Positions 55,837-61,292 of a stretch of 64,000 nucleotides of DNA are shown piece after piece. The position numbers and the translations under genes were made by a program. Below the pieces are notes generated by a model, which worked only from the letters and a program-made list of their open reading frames with translations, had not been told where the DNA came from and did not search any database. The stretch is taken from the sequence record NC_048747.1; one strand, 5' to 3'. Each line of letters opens with the position of its first letter. Position 1 is the first letter of the stretch.

Positions 55837-57099
55837 TTATTCCTCGCTGTCGTCCGGAGCTCTGTTTAACCACGCTTCTCGGTCGTTAGTGTAGTTCACG
55901 TTACCCTCGTTATCTTCGACAGCAAAGAGCACACGCTTAGGGTCATCTTCCAGCTTATCCGGTGAACCCAATGTAAGCACTCTTTTAGGATCAAAGACTT
56001 CCCCGTCCTTTATTCTTTTGCAAGCCTCGTCGATTACCTTCCAGTGATGACATGTCAAGTTCAAAAGACCTGGGGCTTCAGACCGTGCATTCATGTAATG
56101 TTGATAACAAGCATCATCGTACATTTTGACGTTAGCAGAACAACCACGAGGGAAACTAGACTGTTGGTGTTTCTCATTCAAGTGCTGTGCTGCGTCTTCC
56201 AGTATTTTATCCACTTCCTCCGAAACCTCTAGGGGTCCCACAGGAGACTTCACTTCCATAGAAGCACTTAACTCGAGACCAGTGCTGGCACATACACCCC
56301 AAAGGTTGTCCCGCTTAAACCCCACTTCACCACCTGTACAGATGTCACTTAATCGACCCATCGCTTGAACATTAGGGGAGTCAAAGACATCGTCACCAAA
56401 GCAGCTCACCATTACTTCTTCGTAAGGTGGGTAAGTGGTTTTAATCACTTTCTTCACCCAATCTTCATATTTGACGACATCCAGTTCTACCGCCCAATCT
56501 TCCGGATAGGGAGTGAACTCTGCCATCCAACCTATCATGTATGTCTTCCATTCCACGTTACGGAACTTCCATGCTCGAAGGCGGTAACGTTTAACTTTAT
56601 GACGGTACTTGCCTAGGGTATGGTGGTAGAACTTACGAGTCGCTTTCTTATCATAAGTGGAACGGTCTTCAAAAGCCTCTATCATCTCCCAGTAAAACTT
56701 AGGTTGACTGATTCCTAGACGTTCTGTAACGTACTCTACCCAAGCTATGATAGTTGGGTCAGGGTTCACCATCGCACACTCTCCGAATGCCCAGTCGTCT
56801 AAAGAACTGCGACAACGAGCTTCTTCCATCCGCCACACTTTAGACGGATGCATTGGATAACCGACAGGGAACAACGTATCGTAGTAGATGCCATCGTACT
56901 CAAAGAAACAATGATGTGGATGAGACTTCAAGTTCACCGTGATGTCATACTTCTCTTTTAAGATATGTTGTGCGAATGTTGCTACTGCGTAACATTGTCC
57001 GGTGTTCAGATACTTCACCGCCTTGTGATGTTGTAGATTAGCGACAATTGAAAATGAATCGACCAGTTGGTACATTAATTCTTTAATTTGTTTACTCAT
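55837..57099 (-). CDS. Putative Cys-His-Asp (transglutaminase/papain-like) enzyme with C-terminal extension
   Basis: NTGQCYAVA...HPHHCFFEYDGIYYDTL triad pattern. Confidence 0.6.
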   Translation of the reverse strand: MSKQIKELMYQLVDSFSIVANLQHHKAVKYLNTGQCYAVATFAQHILKEKYDITVNLKSHPHHCFFEYDGIYYDTLFPVGYPMHPSKVWRMEEARCRSSLDDWAFGECAMVNPDPTIIAWVEYVTERLGISQPKFYWEMIEAFEDRSTYDKKATRKFYHHTLGKYRHKVKRYRLRAWKFRNVEWKTYMIGWMAEFTPYPEDWAVELDVVKYEDWVKKVIKTTYPPYEEVMVSCFGDDVFDSPNVQAMGRLSDICTGGEVGFKRDNLWGVCASTGLELSASMEVKSPVGPLEVSEEVDKILEDAAQHLNEKHQQSSFPRGCSANVKMYDDACYQHYMNARSEAPGLLNLTCHHWKVIDEACKRIKDGEVFDPKRVLTLGSPDKLEDDPKRVLFAVEDNEGNVNYTNDREAWLNRAPDDSEE

Positions 57100-57486: not shown

Positions 57487-58056
57487 TTAATTACCTAGAT
57501 TCTTATCTTTAACTTTAACAACATGAACATGTTCGGTATCGAAAGCGGCTGAGACTTGATACTCCACATCTATATCCATGACTTCTAAACGATTTTGTTC
57601 TTCCACACTACTACTGATGGTAATGGGTTTAGGGTCACCAAAATCACAACCTTCAGTTCCCATAGGTTTTACACCATAGTGTCCACACACATGATGGACG
57701 ACCATATAGATATCTTCATCCCAAGGTTCCAAACGAAAATAATCCAAAGGTGATACTTCATTTCGATGTTTGCTTGACACACCATAAAACGGTAGACTTA
57801 ACACATTACCACCATTAAAGTTAAGCGTGTCGTAAACTTTCCCCTCATATATCAAAAACGTGTGATGTGGCGAACTTTGTATTTCTACTGTAAAGTCAAA
57901 CGCGTGTCTGAGCACATACGCTGTTAATTGAGCTATCCAGATGCAATCCCCGTTATTGGCTTCTAATAAGGTTTCCTCCCATACCTCGTTTCCGAGGTAT
58001 GAGTGGTACGCCTTAATCACATCCAGTAACACCAACTTAATGGTGTTTTCTTTCAT
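57487..58056 (-). CDS. Putative Cys-His-Asp (transglutaminase/papain-like) enzyme, paralog of 55837-57099
   Basis: NNGDCIWIA...SPHHTFLIYEGKVYDTL. Confidence 0.6.
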   Translation of the reverse strand: MKENTIKLVLLDVIKAYHSYLGNEVWEETLLEANNGDCIWIAQLTAYVLRHAFDFTVEIQSSPHHTFLIYEGKVYDTLNFNGGNVLSLPFYGVSSKHRNEVSPLDYFRLEPWDEDIYMVVHHVCGHYGVKPMGTEGCDFGDPKPITISSSVEEQNRLEVMDIDVEYQVSAAFDTEHVHVVKVKDKNLGN

Positions 58057-58058
58057 GA

Positions 58059-58775
58059 CTATTCCTCTTCGATTTTCTCTTCCTCGATCTCTTCCGGAAG
58101 TTCGTGACCACTTAACCCATAAAGGGTGTGTTTATAACGCTTTACTAAGTTCTCACGGTCTTCTTGCGTAATCTTAGGAAGTTCACTAAAAACCATATCC
58201 TTCCCGGCTAATAAATACTGGAAGTTTCCACCTACCGTTTCATCGACCCCAGACAACATCACTAATTTAAAGGTTGTGGCGAGTTCTTGACCCGTCACTC
58301 CTTTATCATTAAAGATCATTTTGGTTAAGACACGAAACGGACCCGACCCACTACCTATGACCGCGTAGTTGGTTAACTTGGTGATCTCCAGAGTTCGACC
58401 ATCGAACATCACAGTAAAGAATTTTTCACCGACACGGAACATGACCTTTAGACTAATGTCGATATTTAAGTTAAAGTTAATCAAAGACATAGTGTATACA
58501 CCCGGGATGAATTTCTCCAAACCAAATAATGATAACATGTCTGTAGGGTCTAACTTAAGCATCTCTACCGCGTTAGTATTTCCGGCAACTCCCATGAAGT
58601 CCGGTAAATGTTCTACTCCTTCGTCGTCCACATAAGGAGGGGTCAGGTTAGGTGCCGGCATGATCTTTAGATGATCTCTTGTGGCGACTTTAGGGCGACG
58701 TTCTAATTCATCAGCACAACTCACTGCTTTGGAATCAGCCATCATGTCGCCTAAAAATCCAACAACTAAAGTCAT
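58059..58775 (-). CDS. Ntn-hydrolase, HslV/proteasome beta-like peptidase (start corrected to ATG 58775, M-TLVV)
   Basis: Thr1 after Met, ADS, LKI, GVAG, AVIGSGS; AGGAG RBS and ATGA overlap support this start. Confidence 0.7.
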   Translation of the reverse strand: MTLVVGFLGDMMADSKAVSCADELERRPKVATRDHLKIMPAPNLTPPYVDDEGVEHLPDFMGVAGNTNAVEMLKLDPTDMLSLFGLEKFIPGVYTMSLINFNLNIDISLKVMFRVGEKFFTVMFDGRTLEITKLTNYAVIGSGSGPFRVLTKMIFNDKGVTGQELATTFKLVMLSGVDETVGGNFQYLLAGKDMVFSELPKITQEDRENLVKRYKHTLYGLSGHELPEEIEEEKIEEE

Positions 58776-59416
58776 ACTAATTCTCCTAGTTTTTCGTCCA
58801 GTGCCGCAACCCAACCATCTAACACTTTTGGTTCTGGATTCATGGACATAACAACACTTAAATCTCGGTCAGTAGAATAAACCTTAGCTAACTTAGGTGT
58901 TTCTTTTCTGAGACTAGCTAACATTCCCCATTGCAGGCTTTGGGTACTATCTATAACCCCAACAACTTCACTTGCAATTGGTATACCTTTTTCTTCATCA
59001 CTATCGATTAAAAAGGCACTGCCATCACTGACGTCATAAAACTTGATCTCCAAATTTCGGTCATTGAGTTTTAAGTTAACCAAAGTACCTTTGTCAGTCA
59101 ATCCAGCCCATTGGTGTTCTCCCATATTGCTGTGAACCATGAGTGGATGGCGAAGTGGGTACATGCCCTCTTCTAATTTGTCGACTTGGTACAACCACAT
59201 GATGTCGTAAAATTCATTAGAAGAGAAATCCTTCCCTTCGGCATCGTCGTAAGCTGCACCATAGAGAACGTACTCCAGGGTACCTTCTTCACGTTCAATA
59301 GGGAAGTCTTTACTCCAAACCGGACGGGCGGCAGAAGTGGTCATGCACCAAAACGAACCGCGTTCAGTAACCGCAGTCACCATCAAGCCACTTCTATCTA
59401 TGCTAATGATGGACAT
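58772..59416 (-). CDS. Hypothetical partner protein, paralog of 60127-60765
   Basis: TERGSFWC, LEEGMY, WAGLTDKG, LQWGML, PKLAKVY shared pattern. Confidence 0.75.
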   Translation of the reverse strand: MSIISIDRSGLMVTAVTERGSFWCMTTSAARPVWSKDFPIEREEGTLEYVLYGAAYDDAEGKDFSSNEFYDIMWLYQVDKLEEGMYPLRHPLMVHSNMGEHQWAGLTDKGTLVNLKLNDRNLEIKFYDVSDGSAFLIDSDEEKGIPIASEVVGVIDSTQSLQWGMLASLRKETPKLAKVYSTDRDLSVVMSMNPEPKVLDGWVAALDEKLGELV

Positions 59417-59419
59417 TAC

Positions 59420-60127
59420 TTAATCCTCTTTCTTTTCTTCAACAGGTAACGTGAGATTAGCCTTGGTGTACAGATTCTTACGATAATCCTCAACGAGTTT
59501 CTTTTTAGCCTTATCACTAAGATGAGGTGTTTTAGCTGTTATGTCGGTGGAGCCTTTATTCACCACCCATAAGTCCCCACCGATAGTTTCGTCTATACCC
59601 GATAACAATAAAAAGTTTAGCGCAACGAACTTCTTATTTAGCGAAGGATTAACCGTACCGAACAGGACCTTCAACACATAGTCGTACAGACCACACACAC
59701 TACCGATCATCCCAGTGTCTTTTAATTCCCCGATATGGAGTTTGTTCCCACTGTACTCTACTCGGAAGCATTGTTCTTCCACTCGGAATAAGAACCAACT
59801 TTCACGGTTACCGTTGACTTGCAAATTGCAGGTTTGGAGGTCGTAATCGCCAGGGACAAAGTTGGTCAAACCGAACGGAGCTAACAAATCGCTTAAGAAT
59901 AACGACACCACCTTAATGCCGAAAGTTGAACCTGCGGAACCCATGAGGTCTGGACTCTTCAAAGTCCCACTGCCGTCATCAAACTTAGGTGTGTCGTGAG
60001 GGACAGGACAAACTTTTAAATAAGATTTAGAAGAATTTCGGCCTCGGTGGTCGGCCTCCAACTCAGCCCCATGACGACTTAATGAGTCAGCCATGAAGGT
60101 CCCTTTATGAAAAACAACAATAGTCAT
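59420..60127 (-). CDS. Ntn-hydrolase, HslV/proteasome beta-like protein (M-TIVV)
   Basis: Thr1, ADS, LKV, GSAG, MIGSV (GSG variant); paralog of 58059-58775. Confidence 0.65.
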   Translation of the reverse strand: MTIVVFHKGTFMADSLSRHGAELEADHRGRNSSKSYLKVCPVPHDTPKFDDGSGTLKSPDLMGSAGSTFGIKVVSLFLSDLLAPFGLTNFVPGDYDLQTCNLQVNGNRESWFLFRVEEQCFRVEYSGNKLHIGELKDTGMIGSVCGLYDYVLKVLFGTVNPSLNKKFVALNFLLLSGIDETIGGDLWVVNKGSTDITAKTPHLSDKAKKKLVEDYRKNLYTKANLTLPVEEKKED

Positions 60128-60765
60128 TACAACCCCTCCAATTCTTTTTCAAACTTACCCACCCATTCTTCAATAAGACCTTCGGAGTAACTAACCGTGT
60201 GTATCGTGACAGAGTCATTCTCTCGAAAATAAGTTTTCAACATCTTAGGAACCTCGGGACGCATGTTAAGCAACATTCCCCAGACCAAAGTTTCCTCGGC
60301 GGAGAAAATACCAAAGGCTTCAGCCACACGAGTACCTTCGTTATTCGCATCAACAAAGTAATTCCCTTCCGTTCCATAGTCCTCTATGGTTAAGGTGGAG
60401 TCAGACAGACTTATTGAAATGATACGACCCTTTTCAGTGATACCATACCAATAAGTTAAATCCGCTTGATAGAAATAACACGAGGGAGCACTCATTTTGT
60501 ACACACCCTCTTTTAGTTCATCCAACCCAAAAGCTTTAGCAACGTCTAACATGTCACTGCTGGCAAGTTCCATAGGGTTTGAATAAAGGATACGGTTACC
60601 AAACATGACTCGTTCAGGTTCACCTTCTTCTGGACAGTATTTTAACTTGTCTCTCCATACTGGTTTTCCTCCCCTATTTTCACAGGTCCAAAAATTACCA
60701 CGGTCAGAAGTAAATTGAACACGGATGTGGTTGGGGTCCGCTTGCAGATAGTAATCTTTCATCAT
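60127..60765 (-). CDS. Hypothetical partner protein, paralog of 58772-59416
   Basis: SDRGNFWTC, LKEGVY, WYGITEKG, LVWGML, PKMLKTY. Confidence 0.75.
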   Translation of the reverse strand: MMKDYYLQADPNHIRVQFTSDRGNFWTCENRGGKPVWRDKLKYCPEEGEPERVMFGNRILYSNPMELASSDMLDVAKAFGLDELKEGVYKMSAPSCYFYQADLTYWYGITEKGRIISISLSDSTLTIEDYGTEGNYFVDANNEGTRVAEAFGIFSAEETLVWGMLLNMRPEVPKMLKTYFRENDSVTIHTVSYSEGLIEEWVGKFEKELEGL

Positions 60766-61221
60766 TTAACTCCATGAATAGAAGTGAGTCGGTTCGTCGG
60801 CACGGTAAGCTTCAATCCAACTCATGAAAATTTGAGAAACTTTATTAGCACTAGGTTTCGTGTAAATGTCACGACGGACAAAGAAAGTAACCACGTTCAG
60901 AGGGTCCTTATTGTTAGCAAGAGATCGCTTTCTCGCAAACTTCATTTCGACCACATTGGGTTCGTCAAAAGTAACCGTGAGCAGTTGATACAACTTAAGA
61001 AGTTTTTCAAACGCTTCCAAACCATAAACCATTTGGATGTGGTATACTACATTGTCGTTGGACTCATGTCCCTCACAACAAGACATTGTTCCCAAATAAC
61101 GACATCGGTTTAATGATTGAATGACTTCACGACACGAAACGTCACAACGCTCCAGAATGGATTTTTCATTTCTTTGATAATGAATCTTTTCTGATTCAAA
61201 CATCTTTGGTTCAGTTTGCAT
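60766..61221 (-). CDS. Hypothetical protein (151 aa) with SCCEGH motif
   Basis: First ORF of the operon; TAAGGA RBS. Confidence 0.75.
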   Translation of the reverse strand: MQTEPKMFESEKIHYQRNEKSILERCDVSCREVIQSLNRCRYLGTMSCCEGHESNDNVVYHIQMVYGLEAFEKLLKLYQLLTVTFDEPNVVEMKFARKRSLANNKDPLNVVTFFVRRDIYTKPSANKVSQIFMSWIEAYRADEPTHFYSWS

Positions 61222-61259
61222 GGAAATATCCTTAATGAATTTTTAAAGTGCAAAAAGGA

Positions 61260-61279
61260 GTGAGTCCCGAAGGACTCAC
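61260..61279 (-). terminator. Terminator after thyA
   Basis: gtgagtcc/ggactcac stem, loop TTCG on minus strand, then CTTTTTGCA. Confidence 0.85.
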
Positions 61280-61292
61280 CTAATTCAATTAA

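Follow-up and report, generated by a model that had tools for sequence, protein, structure and literature searches.

The four-gene module

We analysed a stretch of 64,000 nucleotides from sequence record NC_048747.1, called the window in the following, in which four minus-strand genes, named A1, B1, A2 and B2 here, follow each other almost without a gap (Table 1). The record is the genome of Vibrio phage 2 TSL-2019 (242,446 bp; Aphroditevirus, Gorgonvirinae), and megablast identified the window as its first 64 kb with the same coordinates. The phage is a phiKZ-like, nucleus-forming jumbo phage, with genes for a nuclear shell protein, for RNA polymerase subunits in split form and for a GroEL-like chaperonin; the chaperonin (gp110, 124597-126156) and the shell protein chimallin (gp214, 236365-238431) lie outside the window. 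The products of B1 and B2 carry the signature of proteasome-like N-terminal nucleophile (Ntn) hydrolases, and each B gene is preceded by an A gene that appears to encode a catalytically dead relative. In RefSeq all four genes, HWC03_gp046 to gp043 (A1, B1, A2, B2), are labelled 'hypothetical protein'.

A first-pass annotation of the window had described four coupled or abutting genes in this order, and both the order and the junctions hold. A1 and B1 overlap by one nucleotide (TAATG), B1 and A2 are separated by 3 nt, and A2 and B2 overlap by 4 nt (ATGA); translation of the genes is coupled. Each of the four starts has a GGAG-type ribosome-binding site 9-12 nt on its 5' side. The ratio of non-synonymous to synonymous substitution rates (dN/dS), determined pairwise among three phages, ranges from 0.05 to 0.16 across the four genes (A1, 0.08-0.11; A2, 0.05-0.08) and indicates purifying selection. 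All four are genuine protein-coding genes under constraint. In RefSeq the start of A1 is placed at the second of two tandem ATGs (window 60762/60765). The mechanically derived open reading frame (ORF) of B2 extends past the ATG at 58775 to a TTG at 58814.

Table 1. Genes and signals of the A/B module and its surroundings (window coordinates).
Feature	Coordinates	Strand	Length	Description
Terminator-like hairpin and T-run	61259..61280	-		Between thyA and gp047; consensus scan, pattern match only
gp047	60766..61221	-	151 aa	Cys/His-rich; directly upstream of A1, abuts as TAA-ATG; weak Pfam matches only
A1 (gp046)	60127..60765	-	212 aa	Predicted catalytically dead B-family paralogue, putative B1 partner; PHROG 33796
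B1 (gp045)	59420..60127	-	235 aa	Proteasome-like N-terminal-threonine (Ntn) subunit, Met-Thr start; PHROG 25187
A2 (gp044)	58772..59416	-	214 aa	Predicted catalytically dead paralogue, putative B2 partner; PHROG 33796
B2 (gp043)	58059..58775	-	238 aa (from ATG)	Proteasome-like Thr1 subunit, acidic C-terminal tail
gp042	57487..58056	-	189 aa	Directly downstream of B2; PHROG 6870
gp040	55837-57099	-	420 aa	N-terminus resembles gp042

The B family: an obligatory Met-Thr start and a catalytic signature

B1 and B2 are paralogues with 32% identity (E-value 5e-41). The first-pass annotation had read an HslV/proteasome-beta pattern behind an M-T-x-V-V start, and the corresponding motifs are found in both proteins: MTIVV...MADS...LKV...SAGST...IGSV in B1 and MTLVV...MADS...LKI...VAGNT...IGSG in B2. 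That they go beyond chance follows from the family alignment, in which the same residues are invariant or nearly so among 20 homologues of 231-262 residues with pairwise identities down to about 21%. All 20 proteins start with Met-Thr; T2, K37, G65, G92, G141, S142 and G183 are invariant, position 14 is occupied by D in 19 proteins and by E in one, and G182 is kept in 19/20.

The reading frames fix the N-terminus. An in-frame stop codon is located 6-14 codons upstream in 19 of the 20 B genes, with no alternative start in between; in B1 it lies 7 codons upstream, and there is no other possible start. Thus Thr must be residue 2, and a propeptide cannot be present. The B gene of VP4B (sequence L005, 4001-4768) is annotated 12 nt short, whereby the Met-Thr start is lost from the annotation.

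Relative to HslV, B contains a conserved Pro-rich insertion of 14-16 residues between K37 and G65 (strands S3/S4), as well as a long C-terminal helix and a charged tail. The tails are of low complexity, acidic (EEIEEEKIEEE) in B2 of Aphroditevirus and lysine-rich (KKAKKK...) in Tidunavirus and the metagenomic relatives. In the window they are located at 58059-58100 and 59420-59450, and they recur in the homologous sequences L003, L004, L005, L015 and L106.

The A family: a dead paralogue of B

A1 and A2, already described as paralogues of similar size without Thr1, share 27% identity (E-value 5e-31). BLASTP detects no similarity between A and B. Profile comparison with hhalign gave a probability of 94% in the first alignments and, with 19 A and 20 B sequences, a local alignment over 187 columns with 97.4% probability, an E-value of 1.3e-11 and a score of 80; the global alignment spans 208 columns with 98% probability (E-value 1.3e-12). 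Control scores for the local alignment were 16 for reversed, at most 20 for column-shuffled and at most 37 for block-shuffled profiles. This is matched, more weakly, by a HMMER search with the A profile within the phage genome, which hits B2 with an E-value of 1.6e-8, and by Foldseek, which aligns the B2 model with the BFVD model of A1 (E-value 3.8e-5). Even plain inspection of the sequences reveals a common F-G-L-x-x-(F/L)-x-(P/E)-G-x-Y motif. The S3/S4 insertion is present in A as well as in B and is therefore older than the split between the two families.

None of the catalytic residues of B is kept in A. The initiator methionine is followed by S, P, M, A, K, Q, F or G and never by Thr, and the catalytic Lys, Gly and Gly-Ser-Gly are all replaced. 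Instead, the A family has invariant positions of its own (W23, P32, W34, D71, G84 and P174). Homology combined with the loss of all catalytic residues marks A, on sequence grounds, as a pseudoenzyme paralogue and distant homologue of B. Ser2 of A2 was considered as an alternative nucleophile and rejected, as it is not conserved in the A family. The first-pass annotation had proposed A to be inactive alpha-like subunits: that they are inactive homologues of B is borne out by hhalign, HMMER and Foldseek, whereas 'alpha-like' holds by analogy only. An alpha-type N-terminal gating helix is not evident in A, though the A model is unreliable.

Is B a proteasome-type hydrolase?

AlphaFold2 models of B2 and A2 were built on shallow alignments (14 and 9 sequences, respectively), which predate the diverse homologues. 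When the B2 model was compared to the PDB with Foldseek, 35 of the top 50 matches were 20S alpha or beta subunits, HslV or connectase, with probabilities up to 0.92. The order of secondary structure elements fits the proteasome fold, as described by Fuchs, Alva & Lupas 2021 (PMC8665760), with the S3/S4 insertion and the C-terminal helix added. The fold of the superfamily is an alpha-beta-beta-alpha sandwich of strands S1-S11 and helices H1-H4.

A second line of evidence comes from hhalign. In greedy/global mode B aligns collinearly along the whole HslV sequence (168 columns), pairing MT with (M/V)T, ADS with GDG (Asp17), K37 with Lys33, GxAGST with GFAGxT (Gly45/47 region) and IGSG with IGSGG (Ser124/129). 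The global score is 22, compared to a maximum of 12.9 in 60 block-shuffled controls. The HslV profile consisted of 15 sequences with an effective number of sequences (Neff) of 2.1; searches with E. coli HslV gave only sequences of at least 85% identity, and the profile was supplemented with HslV from mislabelled 'plasmid' and 'phage' records. Being this shallow and containing no 20S, Anbu, BPH or PPH sequences, it makes for an underpowered comparison between B and the proteasome family.

A number of observations speak against a proteasome-type hydrolase acting as a peptidase. Neither Pfam nor NCBIfam matches any of the 14 members tested, and PADLOC gives no match either; PHROGs merely assigns A to family 33796 and B to family 25187, both without a name. 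Sequence searches against the PDB with single sequences and three profiles returned no match. The hhalign probability for B and HslV is only 5-19%, so that the equivalence of the landmarks (Thr1/Asp17/Lys33/Gly45/Ser124) rests on a low-probability alignment, and the local score of 24 is hardly above the best shuffled control (22). In the B2 model, which has a mean predicted local distance difference test score (pLDDT) of 68.5, the first 35 residues including Thr1 and Asp14 are unmodelled; its best Foldseek E-value is 7e-3, at template-modelling (TM) scores of 0.3-0.37. The A2 model (pLDDT 56) retrieved only noise, for instance PCNA and WD40 proteins. No equivalent of Asp166 is conserved in the B family. 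Finally, the S3/S4 insertion sits at the site of the signature insertion of connectase, which is itself among the structural matches (PMC8665760).

Missing family matches, weak Foldseek statistics, a mediocre model without its N-terminus and a local alignment score within reach of the shuffled controls are what one would see if the resemblance to proteasomes were coincidental, and A and B formed a phage-specific family of another fold with a non-catalytic, structural or regulatory role. This would leave unexplained that five separate invariant landmarks occur in proteasome order together with an obligatory Met-Thr start in 20/20 proteins, that most of the top structural matches belong to the proteasome family, and that the global profile alignment scores above every shuffled control. 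Moreover, paralogue A lost exactly these residues, as is typical of enzyme/pseudoenzyme pairs. We consider a coincidence improbable and an assignment of B to the proteasome-type Ntn hydrolases likely, with evidence of moderate strength for the fold. The family assignment in the first-pass annotation thus stands on the ordered signature and on the structural matches of B2, and finds no backing in Pfam, NCBIfam or PDB sequence searches. Foldseek, named there as a check, places the B2 model nearest to 20S subunits, HslV and connectase, at E-values of at least 7e-3, and is uninformative for A2.

The insertion gives rise to a different reading of the same fold. B may be a connectase-like enzyme with high specificity, acting in processing, transpeptidation or ligation, its active site shaped by the Pro-rich S3/S4 segment, while A would be an adaptor, a substrate-presenting pseudoenzyme or a regulator in a 1:1 heterodimer. 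The conserved insertion at this site fits here, as do the connectase chains at Foldseek ranks 8, 10, 20 and 26 for the B2 model and a genome in which no unfoldase gene was found; in addition, many of the newly described proteasome homologues have features that do not fit stacked rings (PMC8665760). On the other hand, the insertion is modelled as short strands plus a loop rather than as a two-helix lid, and 20S subunits rank above connectase in Foldseek with better TM scores. The present data identify no candidate substrate, and a mixed particle accounts equally easily for the existence of two ancient pairs. We regard this reading as unlikely, and retain a heteromeric peptidase as the preferred one.

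Two further observations concern B. Among the BFVD models, A0A1Y0SVL6 of Pseudomonas phage Noxifer (201 aa) is a structural neighbour of the B2 model with an E-value of 8.7e-4 and TM scores of 0.42-0.48; weaker neighbours come from 201phi2-1 and Erwinia phage Joad. The Noxifer neighbour hints at related folds in other jumbo phages, and going by these models B2-related folds may be more widespread among them. The gene for A0A1Y0SVL6 was not found in the two Noxifer genome segments looked at (L115 and L116). A role of B as head maturation protease was ruled out, as a separate gene is annotated for this function (gp059).

Distribution, pairing and age of the duplication

Among 50,697 phage records searched by tblastn, only Gorgonvirinae contain members of the two families. 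Two A-B pairs are present in 2 TSL-2019, 5 TSL-2019, USC-1, PDCC-1 and phiKT1019, and a single pair in Aphrodite1, pTD1, VP4B and phiKT1028. When 1.84 billion representative proteins were searched exhaustively by HMMER, the B profile picked up 13 clusters only, all from this phage group. Neither word-indexed searches of proteins nor scans of contigs from viruses and metagenomes brought up anything beyond the same Gorgonvirinae phages, and tblastn with the most divergent member, the B protein of L015, detected no homologues in other phage groups.

Throughout nine phage genomes and five metagenomic contigs, A is located directly 5' of B (20/20 cases), usually with overlapping stop and start codons. 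The order A-B-A-B recurs in the divergent metagenomic phiKZ-like contigs L016, L106 and L109. The contigs with distant members are phiKZ-like fragments, which carry dihydrofolate reductase (DHFR), an HD hydrolase, thyA, A-B or A-B-A-B, a gp042-like gene, a NUDIX hydrolase and a gp040-like gene. In a maximum-likelihood tree of B, the first-position B proteins of Aphroditevirus, phiKT1019, L106, L107 and L109 form one clade (support 92/89); the tree of A is compatible with it and less resolved. This clade and the A-B-A-B order in divergent contigs imply that the duplication into two pairs is old. For phages with a single pair, among them Aphrodite1, a loss of pair 1 is the most likely history. 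The A gene of Aphrodite1 (L006, 3360-4004) is intact and lacks an annotation.

The question of an unfoldase

The absence of HslU from the window, pointed out in the first-pass annotation, extends to the whole 242,446-bp genome: a local tblastn search for an HslU-like AAA+ gene gave a best E-value of 2.8. A ClpX-like ATPase was likewise not detected in the phage genome. Hence, the enzyme would act without a dedicated unfoldase or borrow that of its host. Several short unannotated 'phage' records (OR845448.1, OR851086.1, OR849164.1 and others) contain near-identical host hslV/hslU; they look like host DNA and thus are not to be counted as phage-encoded HslV.

Borrowing could go as far as B replacing or mimicking host HslV in a complex with a host unfoldase (HslU, ClpX or another AAA+ protein), which would divert the ATP-dependent proteolysis of the host, with A modulating the docking. 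The phage has no AAA+ partner of its own, the host genera Vibrio and Photobacterium encode HslVU, HslV is the best-aligned known relative of B in the hhalign comparisons, and HslU- or ClpX-like ATPases occur in other jumbo phages (bioRxiv 10.1101/2023.02.24.529968), which shows that this axis is exploited by phages. Yet B is about 60 residues longer than HslV, with an insertion and a charged C-terminal tail, its similarity to HslV is marginal, and HslVU has no counterpart of the obligate dead partner A. We give this arrangement little credence compared with a peptidase made of A and B themselves.

Neighbouring genes

A gene of the size of gp047 is found at the corresponding position in USC-1, PDCC-1, pTD1, VP4B and L107, and is not found there in phiKT1019, phiKT1028 and L109. 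It is probably the first gene of the A1-B1-A2-B2 transcript, and its membership in the system is uncertain. Upstream of it, the terminator-like hairpin has a 9-bp stem with 5 GC pairs followed by CCTTTTTGCA. It is the likely upstream boundary of a transcription unit holding gp047, A1, B1, A2, B2 and downstream genes. Given this hairpin and the tight junctions, the four genes are probably among the first of a long transcription unit on the minus strand.

Downstream of B2, gp042 and the N-terminus of gp040 have a domain of ~45 residues in common, with a conserved Cys, a Pro-His-His and a Tyr-Asp-Thr motif (BLASTP E-value 4e-11). The motif resembles a Cys/His/Asp hydrolase; the Pfam match is sub-threshold only (PF24591, YunG-like), and no match was obtained in the PDB, NCBIfam or PADLOC. 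A transglutaminase-like partner, as in Anbu operons, was considered for gp040/gp042, and neither structural nor family support was found. In Aphroditevirus, L106 and L109, B2 is followed by a gene comparable to gp042 in length; this does not apply to pTD1. This recurrence makes a functional link possible, and by its position gp042 may be an accessory gene of A/B.

Further neighbours of the module are thyA, an HD hydrolase, a NUDIX hydrolase and genes without an assigned product. In phiKT1028 (L004, 1253-3294) and L015 (2023-3434), the thymidylate synthase gene beside the module is split by a homing-endonuclease-like ORF.

A proposed heteromeric peptidase

Implementing all of the above, we favour, with somewhat better than even confidence, the view that the four genes are two enzyme/pseudoenzyme pairs from a small phage-restricted branch of the proteasome-like Ntn-hydrolases, which form an A/B heteromeric Thr1 peptidase. 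Each A would be translated together with the downstream B in matching amounts via translational coupling. B1 and B2 would be made without a propeptide, and the methionine aminopeptidase of the host would strip Met1 and expose the Thr1 nucleophile, as expected from the known specificity of this enzyme. In B, D14, Lys37, Gly65 and Gly-Ser-Gly 141-143 would stand in for Asp17, Lys33, the Gly47 oxyanion hole and Ser129 of the proteasome beta subunit. A1 and A2, derived from the same ancestor as B, would most likely support the B encoded just downstream in a structural or regulatory role, without taking part in catalysis. Inside the infected cell, the resulting A/B hetero-oligomers would act as a self-made 'alpha/beta-like' peptidase that does without an AAA+ unfoldase of phage origin, and the two ancient pairs would provide two versions of it. 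Complex formation between A and B, peptidase activity, ATP independence and action in the cytoplasm on host or phage proteins are what we infer for such a system.

A bolder version, which we put forward only tentatively and hold to be rather doubtful, is that nucleus-forming jumbo vibriophages independently re-invented the alpha/beta principle of the proteasome in the form of an unfoldase-independent hetero-oligomeric proteolytic particle, whose two anciently duplicated versions would differ in specificity. During infection it would reshape the proteome of host or phage; defence or stress proteins of the host, for instance, could be cleared from the cytoplasm outside the phage nucleus.

Besides the 20S proteasome, all characterised prokaryotic proteasome homologues have, to our knowledge, a single subunit type, which forms homo-oligomers in the case of HslV, Anbu and BPH and stays monomeric in the case of connectase. 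If the proposal is true, the A/B module would represent a second independent origin of the enzyme-plus-pseudoenzyme design and a compact model for the evolution of alpha/beta architectures. We know of few proteases in nucleus-forming jumbo phages, i.e., the protease of head maturation and, in part of the lineages, HslU/ClpX-like ATPases; a phage-made ATP-independent protease would be added to this toolkit. Even if B does not act as a protease, biotechnology could take an interest in a Thr1 ligase or processing enzyme that brings its own adaptor. As partner and neighbourhood are fixed and both phage and host can be cultivated, the function of the A/B family is directly testable.

Comparison with known systems

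Full-text searches of the literature brought up no description of a proteasome-like system for Gorgonvirinae or other phages that form a nucleus; what comes nearest is the HslU-like protein of Erwinia phage RAY.

HslV (ClpQ, MEROPS T01B) is similar to B in several respects. It has no long propeptide, it starts with Met-Thr and uses Thr1 as nucleophile in a bacterial or phage setting, and it exhibits the same order of landmarks, i.e., Thr1, an acidic residue, Lys, G-x-A-G-x-T and I-G-S-G. It differs in being compact, with about 175 residues and no insertions, whereas B is ~60 residues longer with its S3/S4 insertion, C-terminal helix and charged tail. In HslVU, the cognate HslU is usually encoded adjacently, and none was found in the phage genome. 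The sequence similarity is below standard thresholds. HslV forms a homo-dodecamer, whereas B is always paired with a dead paralogue, and this obligate neighbour argues against a homo-oligomer of B.

The 20S proteasome (MEROPS T01A, PF00227) offers an analogy, and only that: it likewise combines two homologous subunit classes, one with Thr1 and one inactive, which in the proteasome are arranged as stacked heptameric rings (alpha7 beta7 beta7 alpha7). Its subunits are the best structural matches of the B2 model, and the two phage pairs recall the subunit diversification of eukaryotes. However, A is a recent sister of B within the phage family and no closer to alpha subunits than B is, so that any alpha/beta-like architecture would have arisen independently. 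B also lacks the beta propeptide, A shows no evident alpha gating helix, and neither matches PF00227.

Phage proteasome homologues as such are not new. A survey reported 22 new families of proteasome homologues, several with phage members, among which PPH, with about 140 residues and without helix H2, was called the first truly viral member (PMC8665760). According to the same work, these families have no informative gene context and no AAA+ partners, all proteasome homologues except HslV and the beta subunits of the 20S particle lack a propeptide, as B does, and unfoldase-independent action was proposed for several of them. The arrangement of pairs had been regarded as undescribed in the first-pass annotation; this agrees with our literature search, but as PPH, AAH and others are already known, the novelty is narrower than implied there. 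Like B, the families PPH, AAH, CPH, PMI-4 and DAH comprise proteasome-like proteins of tailed phages without a propeptide or a co-occurring AAA+ partner (PMC8665760). Unlike the short PPH, B is 231-262 residues long, and where these families lack informative neighbourhoods, B has a dead paralogue as obligate neighbour. The B-profile search, which found only the 13 clusters of this phage group, indicates that B is not a HMMER-detectable member of any of them; the distinction is based on their published descriptions and this search.

Connectase, an archaeal protein ligase acting on MtrA, resembles B in combining a Thr1 proteasome fold with an S3/S4 insertion beside the active site. It differs in that H1/H2 are missing and the insertion forms a lid of two helices; moreover, it is a monomer and occurs in methanogens only (PMC8665760). 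The B model keeps helices after G65. What sets the A/B family apart is the size of B with its insertions, the invisibility to family models at the level of HMMER and, above all, the obligate and anciently duplicated pairing of a putatively active subunit with a dead one.

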